Source of the DNA: Podarcis bocagei
Lineage: Eukaryota
NCBI GenBank assembly: GCA_964188305.1
Contig: OZ076895.1
Length of the DNA stretch: 64,000 nt
Strand: one strand, 5' to 3'
Each line of letters starts with the position of its first letter. The first letter of the stretch is position 1. The notes beneath the pieces were generated by a model. That model saw only the letters and a list, made by a program, of their open reading frames with translations. It did no database searches and had not been told where the DNA came from. This document shows positions 4,046-46,499 of this stretch, piece after piece. A program made the translations under genes and the position numbers.

Positions 4046-5833
4046 CAAAGGAAGCCTGTGAAACTGGAAAGTTGCTTGTTTGAAGTCTGGGGTCAGAGGG
4101 TGGTAAGATCAAGGAATATATCTGTCTTGGGTTCTTCTTGAAAGGATATATGGATATGCAGTAAACACACTCTTTTTGGTAATGATAACACCCAAAGATC
4201 CATTTGAGTTGAAGTGACCAGAGCCAGCCATTAAGATGGAATAGAACTATGCCAGCCAACTTGTTTATGTCAAGTGGAATCTTTCTCCATTTTATACTTA
4301 TTAATGTGAGCATCATTTACTACTGGCCTTTTCTGAACTCAGAAATGCATCCTACTTGAAGATGGAAAAGAATGTTCTAATTATAGGAAGGCCAGCAAGG
4401 GTTTCAGCCTGCTTTACGTTCGTGTGACTGCCACCTTAACAAAAAAACAACAAACATTATTCTCTTAGCTAATTTTTTTTTTTTTTTAGAAGGCTATATG
4501 AGTAGGACATGATCTGGCTAAACTTGGTGGGAGACAGTCAATGAGGTCCTGGGTTTTATTAAGGGTCCCCATTAACTTTCTCCTTTCCCCCCAATTTGAA
4601 CAGTGACGGGAAACATTCCTAATGTGCCTTATGGATGTTGACAGTTCTTGACCTGCAGGAACAAGACACAAATCTTTCCCTTTGGGCTTTAGATTGCCCA
4701 GAGTTAAAAGTGTTTAAGATTCATATTTTAAGAAGGACTTTTGGATTTGCATAGTAAAAAAAAAAATCCAAAGTGGACCAATATTTTCAAAATAAGCAAC
4801 ATTAGTGGTGGTGGTGTTTATATACTCCTTTTTGAAACAGAGCACCGCCCCCCCCCCCAGGAGGGCATTTTATGCAACAAAATACACAGTCAAGTGCAAT
4901 TTTAAAAATCACTGCACTTTGGGTTTTGGGTGGACTAGAAGGGGGTACCAACCCCCAACCCCCAGTACACATAAATATGAGCACCAGGAATGAACGAAGA
5001 TTTGCATATTTTTTGTCATGTTAACATTCAGCCTCCAGCATTTAGGGTGCAGCAAATAAAAGTTTGGTAAAAATTTCTTTATTTTATGCCCTGCACCTTT
5101 TGGTGTGTGTTACATTTGAAAGGAACAGGATATTCTGCAGCTCAACAGCAGCTGCATAAAATTGCCCTTTTTAGACATGGGCCAATTTGATGCCTTGGAG
5201 ATTCCAAAGAGAACTACTTATATTTGAATCCCTGTTACCTGAATTTCATTTATATATCCCTCATGTCACCGGTTGGTTGAGCCATTCAGATAAATGAGGC
5301 ATCATATAATGGCCAGCTATGCTTGTAGTGACACGGGGACTTCAAATGACATTGTCTACCTCATGAGGAAATGCAGCTCACTTGCATTGATGCGCAACAA
5401 CGCTGGTTACTACTTGTCAACCGAGAAAGAGAAGCAAGATCAACATCCTCCGCACGATGCATTTCTGAGGCCTTGCCCACATACAGACACAGTAGTGGTG
5501 GTCAAATTATCCCTGGACACCTTTAGATAGGCAACCATATGGTTGAATGAAAAATTCCCTGCTCTTAAGCCAGCTTTCTGTTAGGCAAAGGCTGTGCTAC
5601 TTGGTAGTACTTAGTTTTTGTGTGTGCTGAGGGACCATTCAGAGCCCTTCCACTCCCGGGTAACCTGAACAGGTGTAATCCAGAAAGAATTTTAATATTT
5701 CATCCGCTGTTTGGGGAAACTTTAGTCTGTGGCCTTGCCACAACTAATAACCATCATCATTGACCATGTTTCTTCTTGTTCTATTATTATTATTACTATT
5801 ATTCTTTTTTTTCTCCCCTGTTTGTAAACAAAG

Positions 5834-5932
5834 ATGAGGAAAAAGGAGCGTTCTCGGACCTGCCCCAAAAAAGTGATCATGCTCTCTTCTTCCTCCATTT
5901 GCACTTCCTCTCCATCGTACCCCAGTCAGCAG
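5834..5932 (+). CDS. MICAL3: MICAL3 cassette exon, 99 nt, phase 0-0 (MRKKERSRTCPKKVIMLSSSSICTSSPSYPSQQ)
   Basis: Polypyrimidine tract then aacaaag| acceptor, CAG|gtgatt donor, open frame; resembles the CPKKVI linker segment I recall from long vertebrate isoforms; TGCATG at 5945-5950. Confidence 0.72.
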
Positions 5933-8550
5933 GTGATTTCATTCTGCATGCTCTGTCCTCCTTTCCCTCTCTTCCTGCTTCCACAAGTAGGCCACGTACC
6001 CCTTCTGTTTTGAGTTTTCTCCTAAAACTGAATAGTGTCAGCAGACCTCTTGATCTTCCCTTCCCCAAAACCAGTAACACAAGCAAACCCAGAATTCCTT
6101 TTATCATTGTTTGATTTAAGGTAATGTACACATATAACTTCTTACATTCTGTTGTTACGGTTACATTGTGTAGTAGGTTGGTGTACCAAACAAAAACCTG
6201 AGATCTTAGTAAAGGTTGCTGTTGATAGTGCCCAGTTGTTATATTGGGTGCTGTAAGAGGAGTGACACACTGGTTTCTGGATCTAAAATGAGCAGTCTAG
6301 GTGGCCTTCAGCTTGGTTTTGCATTGTAATGAGTAGAGAAGCATAATGTAATGCCTCTGTAGGCTTCCCATTCATTGCTGAGATTACAGGCGCATCCTTT
6401 ATCCATCTGTTTGTTTATTTGAAGTACTTGCATGCTACCTTTCAGAGAAAAGCTACTCACTCCCAAGGCGGCTTACAAAAGATATTTCAGGACAATTTAG
6501 CGGTTTAGGATATTTTCTATCCCCTGCCCCCATTAAATACCACTGAAAGGGATGTCCTATCTCAGGATCAGAGGTTATCCTGGACCTTACTTTCTCTCTA
6601 ATGAAAATAAGTTAGATAATGTGCCTAAACCTGCCTTCTCTGGCCTGGTCTAGTACAACTCTCATTACCCCAGACCATTCGCCATGTTGGGTAGGGTTGA
6701 TGGAAGTTGGGGGTCCAACAACATCCTCAGGGCACCAGATTGGGGAATGTTAGCCTTGAAGCAGATTCTTACATTTGGCCTGTGATGTGGGAACTGCTAC
6801 AATGCTTCTCCCATAGCACCAGGATGACTTTGTTTAATGAAGGGGTCGTGCAGACATCCTACGATTTGCTAGAATGTAAACCCATTGTTGTTGCTACATT
6901 ACTTAGAAGTTGGGGAGGCCAGGATGCTCCCCACTTCATGAGAATGACAAGGAATTCCAAAACATAGCCCCCAAAAGTCCTCCAGGTTTTACCAATTCTA
7001 GCCTGCTGCGGTTTCCCTTACTTTCCTAGTGTGTTGTGCTGCTCTTACTTACCTCCACCAACTGACCATAGTACCACTAATCAGCATGGCAGTCGTCTAG
7101 AATGCCTGGGCCCAGCTGTTTTACCTGGCTTTGGGACCTTGGGAAGCCTCCCCCATTTCCTGGTCACCCTCCCTCACTGACGTTGTTAAAACATTCCTCC
7201 AAAGTAGTTTATTGTTGAATACTTTGTTCAAATCAGGCACCCCAGTTACATGATTGTGTCAAAAATGTGTGGGCCTTGATTCAATTTATAATAAATGGTT
7301 TTATTTGAGTTTTTATAATAAAATTAGATAACAGTGCAAAATACACTGATACAATACAGGGCAGTCATACAATTCATCTCAACATCAATTACATATTTTA
7401 TTGGTATCGCGCCATGTTGAACGTTCCATTTGTGCAAGCATTGCAACTCGCTGAAAAGAATAATTCCTTCTCTCTTCTCCTCCCCAGCGTGCTACTGTTG
7501 GGGTTCTCCTGACCCCCACTCCCCAGCCAATTTCAGGGGGAGCAGGGGGTGGAGAGGAGGGGAAACCCGTTGCACAAGGGGGAAGTCCTTGTGCAGGACA
7601 TTCACTAACTGGGTTTGTTTTGTTAGGTACACAGTTTACCCCAGGAGTTCCCTCCACAATGTCAGGGCCAAAATAGTATTATTCACAAAGGCACACTTAT
7701 TCTGATGTCCGCAACGTAGAACATGGTTTACTTACAGTTGGAAAAACTGGGTCAGCTTCTCTTGCTTGATCTGCAAGAAGAGTTAGCTTCTAAATGGGAA
7801 ACTTACCACTCAGTCTTGTAAACTATTTGTTTTTAAGGTGTTTTATATTTCATATATAGTTGCATTGACTCACAAAACTGGAAAGTTGCAGGACACACAC
7901 ACACACACACCTATTTTGTCTTATGAAGTATGAGCAGGTTTGTGAGTTTCTGGGAGCTACATTTTTATAAAACTATACCTGTGTGTATAGAGGATAATCA
8001 GAGCTGCCTCCAGGTGTCTGCATTCTTGGGGCAGGGAAGATTACGGTCTGTCTTATCGTAGGATACCACTGTGGATTTCGCAGGCCAGGGAGCCTTGTTT
8101 CTTGTGCACGTTGACGGGAGCCCAAACTCTTCAAAATAACCTTTGAATTAAAAACAGACTTGATTACTTAAGCTCAATGGACATATCTCACTTTGCCTCT
8201 AAAGTTCTCTAAAGTTTATTCCTCATATTACTTTTAAAACTAGGATTTTCCAAGGAACAATTTACGGTTTCTTGGGAGCGGTTCCTTCTTCTGCCACCAC
8301 GTGTATCACTGTGTGGATATTTATTGCTGTTGTCACCATTTACTAACACAGTTTGTATAAAGTTTTGTTTTTAACAGCTCGGCACAAAACCTCTTTCTTC
8401 ACAGCAGCCACATGATCTTTGCAAACCTCCTATGGCTTTTCCAGGACTGTGGTTTTAATGTTTCTCTTGTAGGGTGACTCCTAACTGAACGATGCTATCT
8501 TTCTGTGAGTGTGTGTGTGGGATTTGTCAAGGTCATTATTTTGCCTGCAG

Positions 8551-8607
8551 GCAAACAGGGAACCTCATGGAGAACCAGCTGGAGAGCAGAGTCCCAGACA
8601 GCAGCGG
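8551..8607 (+). CDS. MICAL3: MICAL3 cassette exon, 57 nt, phase 0-0 (ANREPHGEPAGEQSPRQQR)
   Basis: ttttgcctgcag| acceptor, CGG|gtaaaa donor, branch-like ctaac at 8481-8485, open frame. Confidence 0.65.
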
Positions 8608-11786: not shown

Positions 11787-11894
11787 CCAGAGATTGAGCG
11801 ATCTCGTCGATCTGTTGTTGAGCAGTGGGAGCTCTCCCGCAACCTCCGCTCTTCCAGTCGCCCTTCTTCTCCCTCCTCTGACTCCCTCAGACAG
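11787..11894 (+). CDS. MICAL3: MICAL3 cassette exon, 108 nt, phase 0-0 (PEIERSRRSVVEQWELSRNLRSSSRPSSPSSDSLRQ)
   Basis: ctttattttgtag| acceptor, CAG|gtagca donor; resembles the recalled mammalian isoform segment QWELS..LRSS.RP.SPSSDSLRQ. Confidence 0.82.
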
Positions 11895-16648: not shown

Positions 16649-16756
16649 AAGTATATAAAGATGTATACAGGTGGCGTGAGCTCATTGGCTGAGCAAATAG
16701 CCAATCAGCTTCAAAGGAAAGACCAACCCAAAACCCTTCTAGACAAGAAGGAACTG
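16649..16756 (+). CDS. MICAL3: MICAL3 cassette exon, 108 nt, phase 0-0 (KYIKMYTGGVSSLAEQIANQLQRKDQPKTLLDKKEL)
   Basis: Very long pyrimidine tract, tctggtag| acceptor, CTG|gtaaga donor; open frame joining directly to GSLKKEF. Confidence 0.85.
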
Positions 16757-17491
16757 GTAAGAGAATGATGTTCAGAAGGTGATGAGTATTTGTGATTAGA
16801 AGTTAGACAGCTCTTCCTTAGATCCTCAGTAATATGGAGCCTTTAGTTTTCCCTCAGTGTTTAGTTAAAGGTAGCTGATGTAAGCACTTCCTTGCCTGTT
16901 CCTCCACTTCCCTTTGTGGGTTCTTGAATTCTTGCTATAAAGAAAATGGATAGTACACAAAAGATCTGTTGCTGAAAGCTTTGGTGTCTTTGGAGTAAAT
17001 GTGTGGAGATATCATTTGACAGTGGTTGTTTGGAGCTTAGCTTCAGTGGTAATGTGGGAGGAGGATTATTACTATCATAATTGTGTGACCATTTCCACAA
17101 TTTGTTAGTTGTGTACACTTGGTGTCTCTCATCAACTTTGTGAGGTATGTCATCATTATACCCATTTTAGAGACAGGATGTGTGGGAAAGCTAAAGCTGA
17201 GAGAATTAAAGAATTTTTAGATCCTTCAGTTCTCCCATATTCCGCCAGACTCTTTATTTTCAGGTGGTTGGATGCTACACCTTACGGAGTGTGTTCCTTG
17301 GCTGACCTTTTCTTCCTCATGTTGGGGCCTTGGAATTATCCATAGGTGCCTGCCTAGTGTTTTTGCTCAAACGTCCTCCGTTCCCCATTGAAGGATTCCA
17401 AAACAATCTAATGAATACATATGGAACCACAGTGGAAGTAAAAGTATGCTCGTGACTCAGTCTAGACCTTTCCTTGTTCTTGCTGCTTTAG

Positions 17492-17678
17492 GGTTCCTTG
17501 AAAAAAGAATTCCCTCCGAATGTGGGAGGCAGTGATGTCTGCTACTTCTGCCACAAGCGTGTCTACGTGATGGAAAGACTGAGTGCTGAAGGCAAATTCT
17601 TCCACCGCAGCTGCTTCAAATGCGAATACTGTGCTACAACCCTGCGCTTGTCTTCTTATGCCTACGACCTGGTGGATG
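17492..17678 (+). CDS. MICAL3: MICAL3 LIM domain exon 1 ([62 protein letters not shown]), phase 0-1
   Basis: tgctttag| acceptor, ATG|gtaagt donor; LIM zinc ligands CxxC..HxxCxxCxxC; near identical to recalled human MICAL3. Confidence 0.97.
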
Positions 17679-18845
17679 GTAAGTGAAATTTACCTTTTGC
17701 CTTAGGGGATGGGCAAAAGCTTCAACTGATGGGTTGCATTCAGCAAAATTGTTGTGCAGGTGACTTCTACTTGCATAACAAGTAGAAGTCCTCCTCCTCC
17801 TCCTTCCCCCCACTTGTGTCCCCATACCCAAATCTTCTCTGGGGGTTCCCACAGGCTTCTGGGACAGAGGTTTTTTTTGGGGGGGGCGGGAACTCAGGGA
17901 GTAGAAGAAGGAGAGGGAGTTCCATTGTGCAAGCAGAAGTCATTGAGATCACAACATGGCTTTTATTGGATTCAGCCCTTTGACTTAGAAATAACCTTCA
18001 GGATTCCATATATCTTTAGTATGGTCAGGAAATCATTACATCACTGTTTGGCCCACTTCAGATATACCATCCAAAATTATTATTGTGCAGGAGGTATTTG
18101 TAGAAACTAAAATGCACATTGTAAATACTGCTGTCTGAAGCTGGTTGAACTGGGAGTTGAACTCTCCATGCTCAGGATTTTTGTGTGCTGCCAGAGATTA
18201 TGGAAAACTCAGAGTGGGAAGCCATTGCTCTTGTATTTGCACTCATGGCTAGACAACTGCAGCATCATGTAAACAGGACTCTCCTTGAACACTGTTTAGA
18301 AGGTTCAGCAACACACTGGAAGTTCTTGCAACACCATACCACAGGCTATTTGCATCTGTGAGATGATAACTTTTGAATATTTGTAGTTAGAAATCACCTG
18401 GGTGACCATGGTACATAGATTTCTGTTTGGATTGGCCAATTCTTGGTAAGCAGCGGTCTGTTTGGAGTTAATGCCCAGCCCTTTCCTCTTTGCATTCATT
18501 CTTGCCTTTTCCGCAGCACTTCTGGCACAGCCAGATTTCCATGTGATGCAGCCTTTGTTCCTCATACAGTGCTGCTTTGTGTGCGATACCACGCAAGTTC
18601 CCCTGGGATGTTCTGGCTATTGGTTGGGTGCTGGGTAAATGGCTGTCAGGCACCCTATGGAAAATCCATATGTTTTCAGGAAAGGAGGAAATTAACGTGA
18701 ATTAAATCTTTGAGGCATAATTGTCTCCATGTATTTTGTATGTGACAGGGCAGAGGAGATACAGAGGAACTGTGGCATTGCACGGCATTGACAAACTGTA
18801 GCTTTTGTCTTTCTCATTAGCATTTTCTTCTTGCTCTATTTGCAG

Positions 18846-18934
18846 GGAAATTCTACTGCAAGCCTCACTACTGTTACAGACTTTCAGGTTATGCACAGAG
18901 GAAGAGACCGGCAGTGGGCCCTCTGTCAGGAAAG
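18846..18934 (+). CDS. MICAL3: MICAL3 LIM domain exon 2 (GKFYCKPHYCYRLSGYAQRKRPAVGPLSGK), phase 1-0
   Basis: tttgcag| acceptor, AAG|gtaggc donor; completes the LIM domain (CxxH). Confidence 0.97.
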
Positions 18935-19782
18935 GTAGGCTGTTTCCTTGCATTTCCCAGATGAGACTGCTTTGCCATTTTATGTTGGGAAGTGGCTTTG
19001 GGTTGCTTGGAAGGGGGAGAGCAGTGTTGCAGAATCTTTCTGAATCCTTTATGCATTGATCTTGCCTGCCTTTATTAGCTGTAAACTCTTAAACAGAACA
19101 CATAATGGAAACTTTTTATCAGTTGTTTTTATAAATTTGTTGGCTTACCAAAACCAAGACAGCAGTATGTCTGGAGAGAGAAGATGAAAAGCTGTGCCAG
19201 TGGTGTGCAAATGGGCATGTTGCCATTCATATTTACTTCTGTCTATCCAAAATCCAATTTATGGTGTTGGATAATAAAAATAGGTTCTTTTTATCAGGGG
19301 ACTATTGAAAAGTACTCATACCCAAAGAGTGGGAATTTACTAATTAAAACATGGATATGCATGAAAGTAAATTCTGCCTTGAGAATATATGTAATAGCTG
19401 ATCTACTGGACAATGATTACATTTACAAAGTAACATGAATTAATTTTACTTATGCAGTTAATTTTTTGGCAGTTGGTTTTATGGCAAGTAGTTCTTCAAG
19501 GCAATACTATGGAAAAACGATACGTGTGATACTATTATTTTTGGTTAAAATCAGCTAACCCCAGGCATGCCCTCCATATGGCTTTACTTGAAGAAGCAGT
19601 TAGATAAATAACAAAGATATACTGAGAATGTGTGTCCAGGTCTGGAATATGCCTGAATAAACTAGGGTTATTGTTTCTCCTGGATCTAAAACCATAAAAC
19701 CACCTTTTGTCTGTTTGCATTTGCTCACTTTTAAATTACATAAATTTAATAACTGCATCCTTCCTTGCCTGTTTCCCCCCAG

Positions 19783-19870
19783 GACAGCAAAGGGACCCAA
19801 CAGGACAACATGGCGGCTGACGGTGCAGGACGTTCAAACTCCATCTCAACTTCGTCGGAGAGGACTCCAG
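19783..19870 (+). CDS. MICAL3: MICAL3 exon (DSKGTQQDNMAADGAGRSNSISTSSERTP), phase 0-1
   Basis: tttccccccag| acceptor, CAG|gtagct donor; aligns to recalled human EAKGPLQDG..SSTERTP. Confidence 0.93.
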
Positions 19871-20112
19871 GTAGCTCTGCTTCCTTGTTTGGCAGGGTGA
19901 TGCAGTACTCGCTCCACCTCTTTGACAGAGTTAGGGTGGCAAGCCAGCTCCTGCAAAACACAGTTTCCTCAGTTGGGCACCACGTAGCCCAAAATCCTTT
20001 GGACTCCTTTTTCATGTGCCAGCTGATGGCTTTTGGAGTCCCCTTTATCTATGTCCAGTCAGAGGTTCTTGTGCAGATAATGGGGGAGTTTTTATCAGCA
20101 CTAGGATATTAA
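19871..20112 (+). CDS. MICAL3: Putative read-through terminal coding extension of a short MICAL3 isoform (GSSASLFGRVMQY...NPLDSFFMCQLMAFGVPFIYVQSEVLVQIMGEFLSALGY*)
   Basis: The frame stays open for 80 codons past the 19870 donor (ORF 19765..20112) with protein-like composition, then passes into AT-rich UTR-like sequence. Confidence 0.65.
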
Positions 20113-23100
20113 TACAACTTTTGTAACACTGTGTAACGTGTGTGCAGGAGGAAATTAGGGGTTATGTGGTGGTGGGGTTACATTATGGTTTGTAAGACAA
20201 AGCTGCTGTTCTGAATGCTGTCCAGGTAAACACAGACACCCAGTTCAAGATTTCTTGGGTAGGTTCAAATAAATTAAAAATTGCTAGTCATACCCAGAAC
20301 AGACCAATTGAAATTAATGGACACGACTAACTTAGCTTAATTAATTTCATCAGGTCTACTCTGAGTAGAACGTAGCTGGATGCAACCCTTAGTCTGCAAA
20401 ATCTACATTGCTGAGCGAATTAAATATAGCATTAGCATGGTATGAAGAAGTCCATTGACTGGATTTCTGTGTTCACCTGCAAAACTATCTTCTAGTTCTC
20501 ACCGACATGGTGTCTGAATAGCAAAACATCAAAACCTTGTTGATACGTTTTGAACCATGCCTGCTAGACATTCCTTGTTGTCTTTCACAGCCTTTAACTC
20601 TGGGTGATCTTGGTGTTGGCAGGTTGTGGAAATTTCTCCCAAAATATATGCTTTGCTGTTCTGGACTGGGGCTGACAAACCAAGCTGTATGCTGTTGAGG
20701 GCATTCTGGTTAATCTTAAACTTGATTCCTGTCTCTGTGTGAGAGAGAGCGATAGACTCAATTTGTGCCACAAACTCTTGTTTGGACGGACTTTTACTTT
20801 GACCTTTTGGTGATTAAATTTGAATAGCACTTGATAAGAAGCCAGACTGGATTCTAGTTGTGGAATCTTCCAAGCCAAACAGGTTTAGATTTTATTTTTT
20901 TATGTAGAATTAAATTATATAGCCATAGTTGTGCGTAGGAACTAAACCGTTGCCCTTCCATTGGCTAAATGTTTCTAAATAGTATGAAAAAATCCAATTG
21001 AAGGATCATTCAAGATATTTTTTTTCATTTATTTAATTTTAGTTGTGTACACTCAATAGCATTGTACAGTTTCTGTATTTGTGTGACATTTCCCACCCAG
21101 AAGCAAAATGAAAGAGATTTAAGATTTAAGTAAGCTCTGAAAAACATTTTGTATTAAGCAAGTCTTTCAAATGTGAAAACACAGCATCTTGTAACTATTG
21201 GATAGGAGTCATTTGGCTGTGGAAACAAAGAGTTCTGGAATTTTGCACTGATTAAATTGCTTGATCAGAGATTGGATGTTGTTGTTCAGGTAACTTTTAA
21301 GAGTTCAGACTTCTGAATACTGCTTGTGTTGAGCTTCTGCCTCTGTTGTCTTGAGACTGACAATCTTGCAGAAGTTGATTGCAGTTGGAGTTGCCAACTT
21401 GGTCTAGCATATTTCACCAGCTCTTTACCTTGTTAATTTCAGTTTAGCAATAATTATTCTTGGCCTAATATTGTAGTGAAACCTGTCCTACATTCCCTGC
21501 AAGCCATCTAACTTTTAGTTCTAGTTCCCTGCTGGTCAGGGCAAAAAGCAGACAATTTTTGGCTCTCTGCTGAGTTCAAAATTAACTTGAATGTATAAGT
21601 TTGCTAATCACTCAAAGAGTATGGGAAATTAATGTGTATTTTCATAGGAGGCTGCTGGAGGAATCTCTATATGTTTAAAATTTAAGATCAGGACTCTTTC
21701 ATGTGTCTTTGTTTACATATACCTATTTATGTGTCTATAGATATTGTAATCTCTACAAAGTAGAATCCAGCAATAATGAATTGAATAATTAATTCTGGCC
21801 TTTGTGTTATATAAGCACCATGAACTATGATAATAGTTAAAGACAGTGCTGGGGGGAAATATTTCAAATAATCAGAAGCCAGCATTTTATGTGTTCAGAG
21901 CTGATAAAAACGTTTCAGTCCCTAGATTCCAGCTGAAGTATCCTAATCAGAGAAGTTTCAGACTTTGGCAGTCCTCTGTGAGGCTGGTCTGTCCTCATGC
22001 AAACTCTGAATTGCCATTGAGGTAGAGATATAATTCTATTAACTGCATGTTTCGGACACTGGAATTCATGCAGAGATTGGCATTTCATAATGTGGAAAAT
22101 GATGGTGATTTGAAAAGGGGGAAAATGTGATTTTAATAGAATGTAATTGGATGGTAGTGGGGGAAGCGGAGAAGTGCAGTCTTGGAACGAATAGAAATCT
22201 GCACTTCTCGTTGACCTGTGTTCATGGTCAGCTGCCCATTCCAAGCTGACCCTTGGTTCCCGTGGAATAGGTAAATGCATGCTAGTGGAGCCGTGCTTAC
22301 TCTATTTGCATGTTTCAAACAAATCTGCAATCAGTATTTGCTTGGTTACTATGAAATTTTATGTCGCCTCCCTTCCCTACTTGTCGGCTAACTTGAATAG
22401 TAGAGAAGAGAGCTCTTCTGTACTGAGGCATTAGAATAATGGTCAGGAAACAATAAGCACTTTTTATTGTGAGATAATTTTGCTCTCTGGCATGTGTGGC
22501 TCTTGCATTATAGGTGATTTGTGACTCTCCCTATTCTGTTACAAAAGGGGAAGTTAACTGATCTCAAAGCTCAGTATTTAGCCATTAGGGTAGGCCAAAT
22601 CTTCTCTTGATGTCCACCTCCTGGTCTGCCCAGGAGTGTGTGTGGCACATGTGAGTGCTTTAAGTGAGTTAGCTTTTGATGTTGCTGCTATCCGGTTACA
22701 CTTCTTGCACACTGTCTCCAAAACGTGCAACCCTTTCTGCTGGTGCAGGGGTGGTGAAAGCTGTGACAGGCGCTTTCTTGTGCTGAACTCTGGCATGCTT
22801 CTGGCAAACTCTGTATTACGCCTTTTTCTTGTACTGTCTTCCTGGGATTTTGTGTCAAGCACTCTCTGCATTTGCCTTTGTGACACAATTGCTGCTGGTG
22901 CCAATAAAAGGAGTGGGGGTGGAAAAAAATCCCTTGCTTTTCAATGGTTGTATTCTGTAATAGTTGTATGTCTCTTGTATTTTGGAATGTTTTACAGTGA
23001 GTGTCATTTTTTATACATGTCTTTTTTTTTTTAACACGGAAGTATTGTTCTTTCTGCACTTGGTTGTAAATGTCTGTAAAATATTTTTGAATGTATTAAT

Positions 23101-32014: not shown

Positions 32015-32907
32015 CAGTGGTGCCCCGCTAGACGAACGCCTCGCAAGACGGAAAACCCGCTAGACGAAAGGGTTTTCCGTTTTGGAGGCGCTTCGCAAAA
32101 CGAATTTCCCTATGGGCTTCCTTCGCAAGACGAAAGCCCATAGGGAAATCTCCGGGACAGCGGGGAAGCGCAGCGCTTCTTCCCCACTGTCCTCGGACCT
32201 CCTCCGAAGGCTGGCGGTGGGGCGGAAAGCCCTTCTTCCCCACGCCAGCCTTCGGAAGGCTCCTCCGAAGGCTGGCGGTGGGGCGGAAAGCCCTTCTCCC
32301 CGTGCCAGCCTTCGGAAGGCTCCTCCGAAGGCTGGCGGTGGGGCGGAAAGCCCTTCTTCCCGCGCCAGCCTTCGGAAGGCTCCTCCGAAGGCTGGCGGTG
32401 GGGCGGAAAGCCCTTCTCCCCGCGCCAGCCTTCGGAAGGCTCCTCCGAAGGCTGGTGGTGGGGAGAAAAGCCCTTCTCCCCGCGCCAGCCTTCGGAAGGC
32501 TGCTCCGAAGGCTGGCGGTGGGGCGGAAAGCCCTTCTCCCCACCCCAGCCTTCGGATGGCTGTCCTGAAGACTTGCGGTGGGAGGAGGGTTTTCCTTCCC
32601 ACCGCCAACATTCAGAATGCTGTTCTGAATGTTGGCGGTGGGGAGGAAAAACCCTCCTCCCACGCAAGCCCCGGGAACAGAGGAGAAGCGCTGCGCCCCT
32701 TCCCCTCTGTTCCCGTACCTGTCCTGAAGGCTTGCGGTGGGGAGAAAAGCCCTTCTCCGCACCGCCAGCCTGGCAAGCGGTTTCCATAGGAACGCATTAA
32801 TTGATTTTCAGTGCATTCCTATGGGAAACCGTGCTTCGCAAGACGAAAAACTCGCAAGTAGAAAAAACTTGCGGAACGAATTAATTTCGTCTTGCGAGGC
32901 ACCACTG
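32015..32907. mobile_element. Tc1/mariner (Tigger/pogo-like) MITE carrying an internal minisatellite
   Basis: TA|cagtggtgccccgc...gcgaggcaccactg|TA terminal inverted repeats with TA duplication; repeated subterminal cgcaagacgaa motifs. Confidence 0.9.
32199..32775. repeat. 60-bp GC-rich minisatellite (about 6 near-identical units plus degenerate units), each unit with a 13-bp hairpin
   Basis: Successive 60-nt lines from 32221 to 32521 are nearly identical; the unit contains gccagccttcgga-N7-tccgaaggctggc. Confidence 0.95.
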
Positions 32908-36369: not shown

Positions 36370-37201
36370 GAATCATAGAATCATAGAGTTGGAATAGACC
36401 ACAAGGGCCATCGAGTCCAACCCCCTGCCAAGCAGGAAACACCATCAGAACACTCCTGACATATGGTTGTCAAGCCTCTGCTTAAAGAGCTCCAAAGAAG
36501 GAGACTCCACCACACTCCTTGGCAGCAAATTCCACTGTCGAACAGCTCTTACTGTCAGGAAGTTCTTCCTAATGTTTAGGTGGAATCTTCTTTCTTGTAG
36601 TTTGGATCCATTGCTCTGTGTCCGCTTCTCTGGAGCAGCAGAAAACAACCTTTCTCCCTCCTCTATATGACATCCTTTTATATATTTGAACATGGCTATC
36701 ATATCACCCCTTAACCTCCTCTTCTCCAGGCTAAACATGCCCAGCTCCATTAGCCATTCCTCATAAGGCATCGTTTCCAGGCCTTTGACCATTTTGGTTT
36801 CCCTCCTCTGGACACGTTCCAGTTTGTCAGTGTCCTCCTTGAACTGTGGTGCCCAGAACTGGACACAGTACTCCAGGTGAGGTCTGACCAGAGCAGAATA
36901 CAGTGGCACTATTACTTCCCTTGATCTAGATGCTATACTCCTATTGATGCAGCCCAGAATTGCATTGGCTTTTTTAGCTGCCGCGTCACACTGTTGGCTC
37001 ATGTCAAGTTTGTGGTCAACCAAGACTCCTAGATCCTTTTCACATGTACTGCTCTCAATCCAGGTGTCACCCATCTTGTATTTGTGCCTCTCAATTTTTT
37101 TGCCCAAGTGCAATACTTTACATTTCTCCCTGTTAAAGTTCATCTTGTTTGTTTTGGCCCAGCTCTCTAATCTGTCAAGGTCATTTTGAAGTGTGATCCT
37201 G
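36370..37201 (-). mobile_element. Young CR1 LINE, 5'-truncated (ORF2 C-terminal ~250 codons uninterrupted)
   Basis: ORF 36445..37221 LQNDLDRLESWAKTNKMNFNREKCKVLHLG..RPHLEYCVQFWAP..FSLEKRRLRGDMI; (GATTCTAT)n tail seen as gaatcatagaatcatag. Confidence 0.96.
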
Positions 37202-37576
37202 AAAGATCTAAGAAAATTCATTTAAGAATTCTCTTAATAGCTTTTCTTGCTTTCCTGTGACCGATCTATCAAACACAGTGGCCTGGTCTGAAGCTGCAAA
37301 GTTTGACCTGTTCACTTTGCAGTTCTGTGGTTAGATTCTCTGAGGGCTTGTTTTCTCTCTACTAAGGCTTGTCTCAGTGGCTTCCACATCAGATACCAAA
37401 TGCTGATTTCTACTTCTGATTCCCCGACTATTAATATATTCCCCGACTATAATGTATTCCCAGATTCCAAGTATAATGGCTAAAAGATTGAGCTGTGAAA
37501 AAGAATGTCCCTGGTTCCACCATGCAAGCCGTTACCTTCTCAGATCTCGCCCTACCCCACCTCCATGTCTACAGTA

Positions 37577-42121: not shown

Positions 42122-42317
42122 TTCCCAGTGTAAATGGCGTAGAGGAACCCAGCATTGCAAAGAGACTGCGTGGCACACCAGAGCGGATTGAACTGGAGAA
42201 TTACCGTCTCTCGGTACAACGGGAAGAGGAGTTGGAAGAAGTCCCTGAGGAGACCTTGGCAGAGCACAACCTGAGCAGCGTGCTAGACAAAGGAACAGAA
42301 GAGGATGTACCCAGCAG
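42122..42317 (+). CDS. MICAL3: MICAL3 exon (VPSVNGVEEPSIAKRLRGTPERIELENYRLSVQREEELEEVPEETLAEHNLSSVLDKGTEEDVPS), phase 1-2
   Basis: ttgttccccag| acceptor, CAG|gttatt donor; strong match to recalled human MICAL3. Confidence 0.96.
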
Positions 42318-44768
42318 GTTATTTTTCTTTTTTAAAAAGCCTTAATTTATTTAAAATATGACTTGGCTGCCTTTCTAAAGAATGCCTGTTCAAGGTGGCT
42401 TGAAAGAGTAGAAGTTTAAAAAAATGTCAATAATACAAAAAGGCTCAGAGTTTCCCCCTTAAAAACCAATAAGGCTTGTATCAAATGCAGTACAACGCTG
42501 AATAGGGATTCTCACATGTGCAACAGGACTTTCTCCCCTCTCCTCCACCTGCATATGCCGTATGCCCTCTCCAAATCTACTCTGGAGGGTTGGGGGACCC
42601 CCCAGAACAAATTTATGGGGTGCAGAGGAGAGAAGGGAGGAAGTCTCATTGCGCTAGGGTTGCCGTATTTCAAAAAGTGGAAATCTGGACACAAAAGTTG
42701 TTGAGCTTTTTCTTTTCTGCCAAAGTTTCTGAGCAACTTTTAATGAAATTTGGAAAAATCTCCACTTCCAACATGGGCTGCCATATGTCCAGATTTTCAC
42801 AGACGTTTCAGCGATTTTCTGCCCAAATGCTGTTTAAGAGAGCCGAATACCGGCTGTGTCTGGGAAATTCTGGAGGTATGTTGTGCAAGCAGGAATTCTT
42901 GTGCTTATGGGGCACTTAGCACTACATTAGACAGAAGCCAAAACATTCTCAGCCAGCTAGTTAAAATACATTTCACAGTTCTAACAACCACAAGCCAAGC
43001 CAAAAAGCACTAAGCAGGAATAGGCCAGTCAGAGAACAGATAACTTTCAAACCTTTTAAAAAACTTGAAGTAAAACTTGCAGTAATACAAAGTGCAATGA
43101 AACAGAACAAAAAAAGGAAGAAGTTACTATTGAAATAACAACCATATCCATGCAAAATAATCAGATAAGACAAATTGCATCATAAGCCAGTTTGCAAGCC
43201 AAAGTGTGCTTGAAGGTGCCTAGTCCTGAGAGATGTGACCGGCTGGGCCTTGTTCTCTCCCCCTCCATCCACTGTGAGTGGAAAAGGAACTTGGGGAATA
43301 TGATTTTTAGCTGAAGGGAAACTTTAGTTTATCATTTTTAAAGGCATTTACAGGTCATCTTTCTGGACAAAGTCCTCTCAAGGTGGAAAGGGGTTAAGCA
43401 GCTTCACCTCACTTTTCTTCCACTTGAACACAGCTTGCACTAGGATCCTTTCTGCTTTAAAAGAAATATTTTAGAAGAAAGAACCTGAATTCCACTTTTT
43501 TTTGTAATTTGAGCATGTGTTCTGCACTTTGACTGGGAGTTGCATACTATTTTTAAGTGTCAGTAAACATAAAACTGACTTTTTTCCTTCTTCCAACAAA
43601 GCAAAGCCAACATTCCTCCTTGAGGGCCTAGCTATCTGTCAGGCAATGTACTGAAATAAAAAGCTGTTTTTAAAAAATAATTCTTAACACAAATGTTTGG
43701 AAAAACACATTCTTAGGAGTTGAGAAAATCACAACGAACATTTCTTTGTCTAGATAAAATTCCCAAAAGGATTATGCATTTCTGAAGTTTGCCCATAATT
43801 TCACTTAACAGCCTGGTTTTAAAAAGTTGTGAAAAACCTGTTCCCACGTCTTTTGTGAAAATAGATGGCTAAGCAACAAATGGAAGGTTTCACAGTTTGT
43901 GTGAATAAAGACAGAATCCCACTGCTATTCTTAATTGCAACAAAAGTAACAATATTTTTGCCAGGGAACAAACAAAAGAAAAATGAGATAAATTTAGTGT
44001 ATACTTTTGCTGCTACAATTCTAAGTGAAATGAGTTGGAGATATGTACCTCCTAATCTTTTCAAATATTTTTTGTACTGGAGAATTTCCTGCTGGACTTT
44101 GTCCAATAAAAATGGATAGGGGGAAAGGGTAAAACATATGACAAAAGAAGGGTGAATTCCTGTTGATTTAGCCTCCAGGAGAGGAGGAGCTTGCTTTTCT
44201 AAGAGGAATATGTAACAGGCCTATAAAGATTAAATGTTGTTTTCTTCTTCTAATGGGATCATTCCTCAGTAAGGCGTGTGCTGAAATGAAAGAGGCTGTC
44301 ATTCCATTGATGCTGATTGTGTCTGAGTGGGGGGGGGGGCACTAGTTACCTTCCTCTCATGACTGGCTCTTTTTCACTTTGGAATAAGGGACCACAGAGA
44401 CCTCAAATTGGCTGCAAACTGGGAGTGGGAAATAAAACCCCTCAACAATTGACATGTAGGTTGTGTTTCAGTGCTAAATTCTGATTCAGTTCTGTTTTGA
44501 ATGACCCCATTCTGTCATAGTCAAGAGCAGGGGTGGGGAACATGTGGCAGTGGTTGTGGGAAAGTGGCCTCGTGGACTCGCTTGCAGGCCAAGATTGGTC
44601 TATGGGCCGAAAGTTCCCCACTCCTGGAATAGATGGACAAATATTCTGACCTGGTTTGAGGCAGTTTTGTTGGCTATGGTTATTTTAAAACAATCATCTG
44701 CTTGTACGCACAGGGGGGGAAACCCAGTTGAAGTATCATCTACTAACTTTCCTGATTTTCCTCTGCAG

Positions 44769-45444: not shown

Positions 45445-46402
45445 CAACATAGAATTGGAAGGAACCCCAAGGGTCATCCGGCCCAACCCCCTGCAATGCA
45501 GGAATTTCAGCAAGATCATACATGACAGGTGGCCATCCAACCTCTGTTTAAACACCTCCAAGGAATAACAGTCCACCACCTCTTGTGAGAGTCTATTCCA
45601 CTGTCGAACAGCTCTTAACTGTCAGAAAGATCTTCCTGATGTTTAGTCAAAATCTCCTTTCTTGTAACTTGAATCCACTGGTTCATGTCCTATCCTCCTG
45701 AGGAGAAGAAAACAAGCGTGCTCCATCCTCCATGTGACAGCCCTTTAGATATTTGAAGATGGTTATCGTATCTCCTCTCAGTCTCTCCTTAGCAAGCTAA
45801 ACATACCACATTTCCTCAATCATTCCTTATAAGACTTGGCTTCCAGACCCTTGCTCACCTTAGTCACCATTTTCTGCACACGTTCCAACTTGTCATTATC
45901 CTTCTTAAATTGTGGTGCCTAGAACTGGGCACAGTACTTCAGGTGTGGTCTGACCAAAGCAGAATAGAGCAGGACTAGTGACTTCCCTTGATCGGGACAC
46001 TGTGCTTCTGTTGATGCAGCCTAGAATAGAAGTAGCTTTCTTCCTTTTTTGCTGCTGCATGTTGACTCCTACGAAACTTGTGGTCTACTAAAACCCCTAG
46101 ATCCTTTTCACATGTACTATTTGCAATCCAGGTGTCACCCATCTTACATTTGTGCACCTGGATCTTCCTGCCCAGGTGTAGAACTTTACATTGGTCCCTA
46201 CTGAAATTCATTTTGTTAGTTATGACCCAGGTCTGCAATCTGTTGAGGTCATCTGGAATCCCCATTCTGTCTTCTGCAGCATTGGCTGCCCCTCCCAGTT
46301 TTGAGTCACCTGCAAATTGGATGCGTATCCCCTCCATACCTACATCCAAGTCATTCATAAAGATATTGAACAACACTGGGCCCAAGACAGAACCTTGCAG
46401 CA
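45445..46402 (-). mobile_element. Older CR1 LINE 3' fragment with disrupted ORF2
   Basis: ORF 45975..46424 QGSVLGPVLFNIFMNDLD..FAGDSKLGG..KCKMGDTW..CEKDLGVLVDHK; colinear with the 36370 copy but frameshifted. Confidence 0.93.
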
Positions 46403-46499
46403 TCCCAGTTGTCATGCGTTGCATTCAGGCTTAAAACAGAGTTATAATTTGAGGAGCCTGTTCGACAGGCAGGTACTCCTCCATAACAAAAGGCTTGGG

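Follow-up and report, generated by a model that had tools for sequence, protein, structure and literature searches.

A conserved open frame past an internal splice donor points to a composite terminal exon in Podarcis bocagei MICAL3

We report that positions 19783–20112 of a 64,000-nucleotide stretch of Podarcis bocagei DNA (contig OZ076895.1 of GenBank assembly GCA_964188305.1; the whole stretch is called the window below) very probably form a composite, or alternative last, terminal exon of MICAL3. Its first 88 nt would serve as an internal exon of the long enzyme, and reading on past the donor that ends them would give a short enzyme with a C-terminal tail of its own. The pattern of substitutions among relatives shows that the read-through frame is under purifying selection, and the hydrophobic core of the tail is, judged by its share of invariant columns, about as conserved as the folded domains of the enzyme. 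The short MICAL3 isoform as such is already known and widely annotated, and we count it as known because terminal use of a human MICAL3 exon has been reported (bioRxiv 10.1101/373704). The locus illustrates that when a frame stays open far beyond a donor, the cause can be a true alternative last exon that annotation already records.

An 88-nt exon with two continuations

Exons were placed by local tblastn of database MICAL3 proteins on the window (Table 1), and the LIM assignment of the two proteins used for the LIM exons, P0026 and P0079, was confirmed by Pfam. The exon that starts at 19783 lies on the same strand as the two MICAL3 LIM exons and directly downstream of them. It holds 29 full codons and, as its last base, the G that opens a Gly codon (GGT), so that the donor GT sits inside that codon; the donor GTAGCT is without the consensus +4A and +5G. 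Across the five related loci that we compared, the donor CAG/GT is kept, as GTAGCT in four sauropsid loci and as GTACCC in L003.

Splicing from 19870 to 42122 would remove an intron of ~22.2 kb, the first 242 bases of which are filled by the tail. The junction joins G to TT to give an in-frame Val, followed by PSVNGVEEPSIAKRLRG..., and the frame continues PSVNGVEEPSIAKRLRGTPERIELENYRL.... Skipping of the 88-nt exon would leave the 42122 exon to be read as TTC CCA GTG TAA, so the long protein needs both the exon and its donor. The bird long isoforms P0071, P0074 and P0077 have the 88-nt exon joined to the homologue of the 42122 exon (...ERAPG-SNVNGLEEPSLAKRLRG...), and our assignment of 19783–19870 as an internal exon thus draws on homology combined with the logic of the reading frame.

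The first-pass annotation of this DNA had claimed that ignoring the donor leaves 80 open codons past 19870. This is confirmed: read-through in frame 1 adds 80 further open codons (the shared Gly plus 79) and ends at a TAA at 20110–20112, the peptide end quoted at the time matches our computed translation exactly, and both other frames are closed. The accompanying description of the end of the tail as free of Lys and Arg stands for the last 39 residues; the same residues do include Asp74, Glu94 and Glu102 and carry a net negative charge. Since mammalian tails often have an Arg (QIRGEF), the lack of basic residues is not a conserved feature.

An antisense open frame of 100 codons (19749–20048, − strand) overlaps the exon and the tail. 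We rejected it as coding because the codon-position pattern and the homologues favour the + frame, and we take it to be a by-product of the composition of the sense frame. At the next donor, after 42317, reading on adds no more than RLFFFFKKP before a stop (window 42318–42344), unlike the conserved extension of 80 codons at 19871. The models of turkey and penguin (P0075, P0076 and P0071) have unrelated read-through endings at the equivalent of the 42122 exon.

Table 1. Coordinates of MICAL3 features and of reverse-transcriptase-like ORF fragments in the window
Feature	Position	Strand	Remarks
Short linker exons between CH and LIM	5831-5935, 8548-8607, 11787-11834		Matched by P0079 or P0026
Upstream MICAL3 exon	within 16676-16765
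First LIM-domain exon, MICAL3 (5' edge approximate)	17501..17683	+	tblastn: P0026 92%, P0079 100% over 17492-17683
Second LIM exon	18846..18934	+	Phase 0 end ...PLSGK/gtaggc; 100% identical to P0026 segment GKFYCKPHYCYRLSGYAQRKRPAVGPLSGK
MICAL3 88-nt exon	19783..19870	+	Acceptor ...ccccccag/GAC, donor CCAG/GTAGCT; internal exon in long MICAL3, would be first part of composite terminal exon in short MICAL3
5' splice site GTAGCT	19871..19876	+	Doubles as part of Gly-Ser in the read-through frame
Tail helix 1, predicted (residues 31-70 of the 109-aa translation)	19873..19992	+	Moderately conserved; AlphaFold2 pLDDT 65-74
Tail core (residues 71-103)	19993..20091	+	NPLD..FFMCQL..FG.PF.Y...E.L.QI.GEF; hydrophobic, 33 residues
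Lineage-specific last residues and TAA stop	20092..20112	+	LSALGY, squamates
Start of putative 3' UTR	20113..20295	+
Next long-isoform exon	42122..42317	+	Acceptor ...ccccag; downstream MICAL3 exons at 42122 and beyond
Reverse-transcriptase-like ORF fragments in MICAL3 introns	36448-37221 and 45978-46424	-

Short MICAL3 proteins that carry the tail

A phmmer search of 1.84 billion representative proteins, with the 109-residue translation as query, turned up five true relatives and no further family; the two weakest matches, P0006 and P0007, are low-complexity proteins and were rejected as relatives. Among the relatives, P0002 is a cDNA-type sequence from a primate run that represents a spliced product, with the LIM domain leading into the 88-nt exon and from there into the tail, and its cluster includes PNJ08532.1, 'MICAL3 isoform 14, partial [Pongo abelii]'. 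A word search yielded 15 short fragments which, together with four other relatives, gave an alignment of 19 sequences; its 26 invariant positions are concentrated in Q..P.D.FFMCQL..FG.PF.Y...E.L.QI.GE.

Full-length models were gathered by a search with the tail region of a 754-aa bird protein, a query chosen to bring them inside the length filter. Of the 53 proteins returned, 45 carry the tail; these 45 are named MICAL3 models, many of them automatic predictions in which one model may derive from another by homology. The carriers come from many birds, four turtles, the squamates Phrynosoma, Varanus, Crotalus and Erythrolamprus, and mammals that range from bats to great apes. Their lengths are 943–1144 aa, with ~950–1070 aa as the usual size, their only recorded Pfam families are PF01494, PF25413, PF00307 and PF00412 (FAD-binding, Rossmann-MICAL, CH and LIM), and the tail lies 33–35 residues from the C-terminus in all of them except the mis-fused P0027 and the alternative model P0049. 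Protein alignments of the tail range from 43 to 99% identity to the window. The nearest protein is P0079 (UniRef100_A0A670KKE0), a 1063-aa MICAL3 model from a close relative with ~99% identity over exon and tail; other named examples are isoform X4 of Pongo pygmaeus (977 aa, P0064), isoform X36 of Equus caballus, isoform X7 of Taeniopygia guttata, Protein MICAL-3 of Chelonia mydas, isoform X4 of Erythrolamprus reginae and [F-actin]-monooxygenase MICAL3 of Varanus komodoensis. Human RefSeq isoforms of 948 and 966 aa presumably belong to the same group.

These proteins bear on two further claims made from the DNA. The proposed architecture, a monooxygenase–CH–LIM protein without bMERB, is that of the 45 named proteins, which add the tail to it, and no bMERB family appeared in hmmscan of P0012, P0002, P0026 and P0028 or in the precomputed Pfam lists of the carriers. 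The statement that short MICAL3 isoforms with an alternative C-terminus are annotated in mammals was also correct, Pongo abelii isoform 14 being one such case.

The window shares with the annotated short isoforms the exon that follows LIM, the donor inside a Gly codon, the order monooxygenase–CH–LIM–tail with the tail at the extreme C-terminus, and the core NPLDSFFMCQL.AFGVPF.Y..SE.L.QI.GEF. It differs from them only in lineage detail. The last residues are of the squamate type, LSALGY or LSALRY, compared with CGQPADQ in birds, YRQPADQ in turtles and HWQAVAQ-like endings in mammals; helix 1 is only ~50–60% identical to its mammalian counterpart; and the window has Ile89 and Met100 where most other short isoforms have Leu at both positions.

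The most divergent carrier is P0004 (L003–L005, from Logan runs SRR17272384, -85 and -96), which is 43% identical to the window and lacks 8 residues of helix 1, with the core nearly intact; if the source of L003–L005 is an anamniote, the tail module predates amniotes. P0005, a mammal-like Logan fragment of 191 aa, has a disrupted core (...NPPDSFSCANYLHSQVPFLYGLSEVLVQIRG...) and could be a frameshifted copy, an assembly error or the trace of a lineage that lost the tail.

Purifying selection on the read-through frame

Similarity to relatives at the DNA level starts at the acceptor and stops at the stop codon. When related genomic contigs were compared by blastn, L007 aligned over 19773–20108, L008 over 19761–20112 and L001, a bird-like sequence from a metagenome, over 19780–20090; stray matches outside 19761–20112 consisted of 41 bases downstream in L008 and of the upstream LIM exon and a weak intronic stretch in L001. 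With the distant locus L003, blastn aligns nothing but the tail core. The closest relative, L006, is 94.5% identical to the window over 1059 bases, and here the flanks are 3% different and the exon differs at 3 of 88 bases, while the tail differs at 0 of 242 (P about 6e-4); a 9-base indel follows directly after the stop codon.

The first-pass annotation had proposed dN/dS as a check on the tail. Among sauropsids the ratio (Nei–Gojobori) is 0.19–0.49 for the tail and 0.03–0.30 for its core, and against the distant L003, where synonymous sites are saturated, core dN is 0.12–0.16. Fisher tests of synonymous versus non-synonymous differences gave p values from 8e-4 to 2.5e-9 for most pairs and p = 0.08 for the window versus L008. 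Third codon positions of the + frame account for most differences in two of the three comparisons, the one with L008 being the exception. Of the stops and frameshifts in relatives that had been named as evidence against the extension, frameshifts are seen in none of the 45 named proteins and 19 fragments, with the exception of P0005. In 38 full-length amniote proteins, 71% of the columns of the core are invariant (scored on the nearly identical 34-residue stretch of the Varanus reference), compared with 82% in the monooxygenase, 75% in CH and 77% in LIM; the corresponding values are 3% for the 88-nt exon and 10% for tail helix 1.

Two explanations of the conserved block would dispense with a selected protein. 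The block might be conserved mainly as an RNA or DNA regulatory element that governs splicing versus intronic polyadenylation, its open frame being secondary. The absence of any change in the tail relative to L006 would fit such an element, as would the conserved non-coding motifs just downstream and a dS of 0.20–0.47 in the tail (19873–20109) compared with 0.60–1.5 in the neighbouring 88-nt exon in the same pairs of species, a contrast that is noisy because the exon has only ~22 synonymous sites. Such an element would not, however, account for dN/dS values well below 1, for the third-position bias in two of three comparisons, for the end of conservation exactly at the stop codon or for a frame kept intact in all carriers and fragments but P0005, and we regard this explanation as very improbable. 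A dual role, coding as well as regulatory, is compatible with a composite terminal exon, and the low dS of the tail may reflect extra RNA-level constraint on the splice-versus-polyadenylation choice.

The other explanation is a chance open frame in a retained intron, the transcript being a target of nonsense-mediated decay and the frame having no protein function. Open runs of the observed length are not rare: at least 80 open codons are expected at 1.6% of positions from the stop-trinucleotide frequency and are observed at 3.6% of all + strand positions of the window, so frame length alone is weak evidence. The read-through frame is shown to be real because it is conserved, not because it is long. 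The alignments, the dN/dS values and the 45 carriers contradict a chance frame, the spliced cDNA-type product P0002 from the primate run also argues against it, and the probability that we attach to it is close to negligible. The composite terminal exon, with a selected protein extension, is the reading that we carry forward.

Predicted structure of the tail and the membrane question

With the 19-sequence alignment as input, AlphaFold2 predicts a helix over residues 31–70 and a second over residues 72–106 (pLDDT 83–93), broken at Asn71-Pro72; the mutual arrangement of the two helices is undefined because the pTM is 0.34. A prediction of the full short isoform (Varanus P0048 plus 40 amniote sequences) had a mean pLDDT of 31.8 and was uninformative on docking of the tail. 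No relative of the tail was found in Pfam, in a PDB sequence search, by Foldseek against PDB or in the ESM Atlas, and a literature search found no functional study of the short isoform or of its tail.

On a helical wheel of the core, the invariant polar residues Q80, E94, Q98 and E102 line up in a single narrow stripe, and the invariant F76, F77, M78, L81, F84, F88, L96 and I99 fill most of the rest, giving a wide hydrophobic face of ~280 degrees. Gly85 and Pro87 are also invariant. The core segment is acidic and has no conserved basic residue. Its hydrophobic stretch lies 11–19 residues from the C-terminus, the best 19-residue Kyte–Doolittle mean is 1.47–1.80 in the 19 orthologues (1.51 in the window) where the usual membrane threshold is 1.6, and Hessa insertion energies, plainly summed, come to +3.1 to +6.6 kcal/mol in every orthologue.

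It had been suggested from the DNA that the tail may be a membrane anchor, in which case FFMCQL.AFG.PF.Y...E.L.QI would be a tail-anchor helix or a monotopic hairpin turning at Gly85-Pro87 and would place an uninhibited actin oxidase on an organelle. Several properties of the tail fit this proposal: the position of the hydrophobic stretch close to the C-terminus, Kyte–Doolittle means that reach 1.6–1.8 in mammals, snakes and L003, the long predicted helix with its ~280 degree hydrophobic face, and the invariant Gly and Pro in mid-run, since hairpin membrane anchors have Gly and Pro in the middle of their hydrophobic run. The C-terminal hydrophobic helix with a central Gly-x-Pro is indeed what the tail has in common with tail- and hairpin-anchored proteins. 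Unlike them, it is marginally hydrophobic (borderline Kyte–Doolittle values, with the window itself below the threshold, and positive Hessa sums throughout), it has invariant polar and acidic residues within the run, so that Gln80, Glu94, Gln98 and Glu102 would fall inside a membrane span, and its acidic segment has acidic rather than basic flanks. Simple anchors conserve composition rather than sequence, and 71% invariant columns would be unusual for one; the tail sequence is far more conserved than those of simple anchors usually are. The literature search also found no localisation data. A simple membrane anchor is thus weakened as an interpretation, and an anchor in either form, helix or hairpin, seems to us possible but doubtful.

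Because polar and apolar positions are both near-invariant, as expected for a helix packed on a specific surface, the core helix may instead be a specific protein-contact element that binds either a partner or the enzyme's own CH, LIM or monooxygenase surfaces; from the sequence pattern we give this contact role an even chance. That the tail acts by membrane insertion or binding of any kind, whether by a hairpin that turns around Gly85-Pro87 or by weak tail anchoring, is conceivable at a distinctly lower level of confidence, and other roles, for example in the control of protein stability, seem unlikely.

How the short isoform would arise

The switch between the secreted and membrane forms of the immunoglobulin M heavy chain is an alternative last exon produced by intronic polyadenylation, and a choice of a comparable kind is proposed here for MICAL3. 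Use of the U1-dependent donor at 19870/19871 would splice the 88-nt exon over the 22-kb intron to 42122 and give the long, Rab-regulated enzyme. When the donor is left unused and the transcript is cleaved and polyadenylated in the start of the intron, translation would add 79 more residues and stop at 20110. The short product would be a protein of ~1060 aa that consists of monooxygenase, CH and LIM domains and a two-helix tail, the tail taking the place of the acidic linker and the bMERB/Rab-binding domain. A donor without +4A and +5G would compete with early polyadenylation, as suggested by the anatomy of the exon and by the human report.

In that report, a human MICAL3 terminal exon also acts as an internal one, containing a 5' splice site; its terminal use gives a shorter C-terminal region and, by RT-PCR, increases on depletion of CELF1 and less so on depletion of ELAVL1 (bioRxiv 10.1101/373704). 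The paper gives no exon sequence, but its description fits 19783–20112, and we infer that the two exons are counterparts; another study concerns a different MICAL3 cassette exon (PMC12721327). The composite terminal exons of SPTBN1 and PPP3CB, named together with MICAL3 (bioRxiv 10.1101/373704), likewise have an internal 5' splice site that competes with a downstream poly(A) site, and in all of them reading through exchanges every downstream domain for a short alternative C-terminus. The MICAL3 extension differs from composite terminal exons generally in its strong protein-level constraint, and its poly(A) site here is a candidate only.

We also infer that the short isoform is expressed and has a polyadenylation site in Podarcis bocagei itself. 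Fourteen small contig sets from four studies, which we guess to be RNA, contain 37–47% of the sampled words of 19500–20400, a share compatible with a transcribed exon-plus-tail segment. Candidate AATAAA/ATTAAA poly(A) hexamers lie at 20268–20278, ~155 nt past the stop, and L006 has ATTAAA at the equivalent position. No hexamer was found within 800 nt in L007 and L001, two of the five related loci; a conserved proximal poly(A) signal is thus not supported, and the true 3' end may lie kilobases downstream. At the human locus, MICAL3 SNPs labelled '3'UTR' extend across 4 kb of the mid-gene region (PMC3366887), a spread that suggests a long 3' UTR for the short isoform in human.

Two elements of the putative 3' UTR stand out. 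The GU-rich run TGTAACACTGTGTAACGTGTGTG, at ~20120–20150, follows directly after the stop and is similar in L006, L007 and L001. Since CELF1 binds GU-rich RNA and represses terminal use of the human exon, this run is a candidate CELF1 site. Further on, at ~20224–20258, the non-coding motif CAGGTAAAC...CAGTT (CAGGTAAACACAGACACCCAGTT) is kept in L006 and L008 and partly in L001; it contains the 5'-splice-site-like CAG/GTAAAC, possibly a decoy for U1 or else an alternative donor within the 3' UTR.

Expected loss of Rab control in the short form

MICAL enzymes take actin filaments apart by oxidising them and also produce hydrogen peroxide, and for this reason they must be tightly controlled. Their known control is the C-terminal Rab-binding domain, and a conserved isoform that has a near-invariant tail instead of that domain implies a second, unstudied mode of regulation or localisation, one that would matter for exocytosis, cytokinesis and MICAL3-linked cancer-cell phenotypes. 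Full-length MICAL3 is autoinhibited by contacts of the Rab-binding domain with CH, LIM and monooxygenase, and interface mutants of MICAL3 disassemble more F-actin (PMC11315924; see also PMC3645671, a review).

The short isoform would have the same N-terminal catalytic and adaptor domains as autoinhibited full-length MICAL1 and MICAL3 but, unlike them, no Rab-binding bMERB domain. With neither the acidic linker nor the Rab-binding domain, the product should be free of the known autoinhibition and should no longer undergo Rab8-type recruitment. Judged by domain content, Rab independence and loss of autoinhibition are plausible for the short form, and constitutive activity is a reasonable expectation, although the conserved tail could replace part of the autoinhibitory control. 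We suggest, tentatively, that the 33-residue core, which is kept almost unchanged in amniotes and in one more distant vertebrate, is an undescribed MICAL3 module that would give the short, Rab-independent enzyme an address or a brake of its own, be it as a membrane hairpin or anchor or as a helix that docks on the CH, LIM or monooxygenase surfaces.

Other features of the window

The two reverse-transcriptase-like ORF fragments on the − strand (Table 1) are presumably of the CR1 LINE kind. A G+C-rich block at ~32064–32800 (GC 0.485) is open in several frames on both strands and contains repeated units (...PPKAGGGAESPS...); the block, which lies within the 22-kb intron, is probably a tandem repeat.
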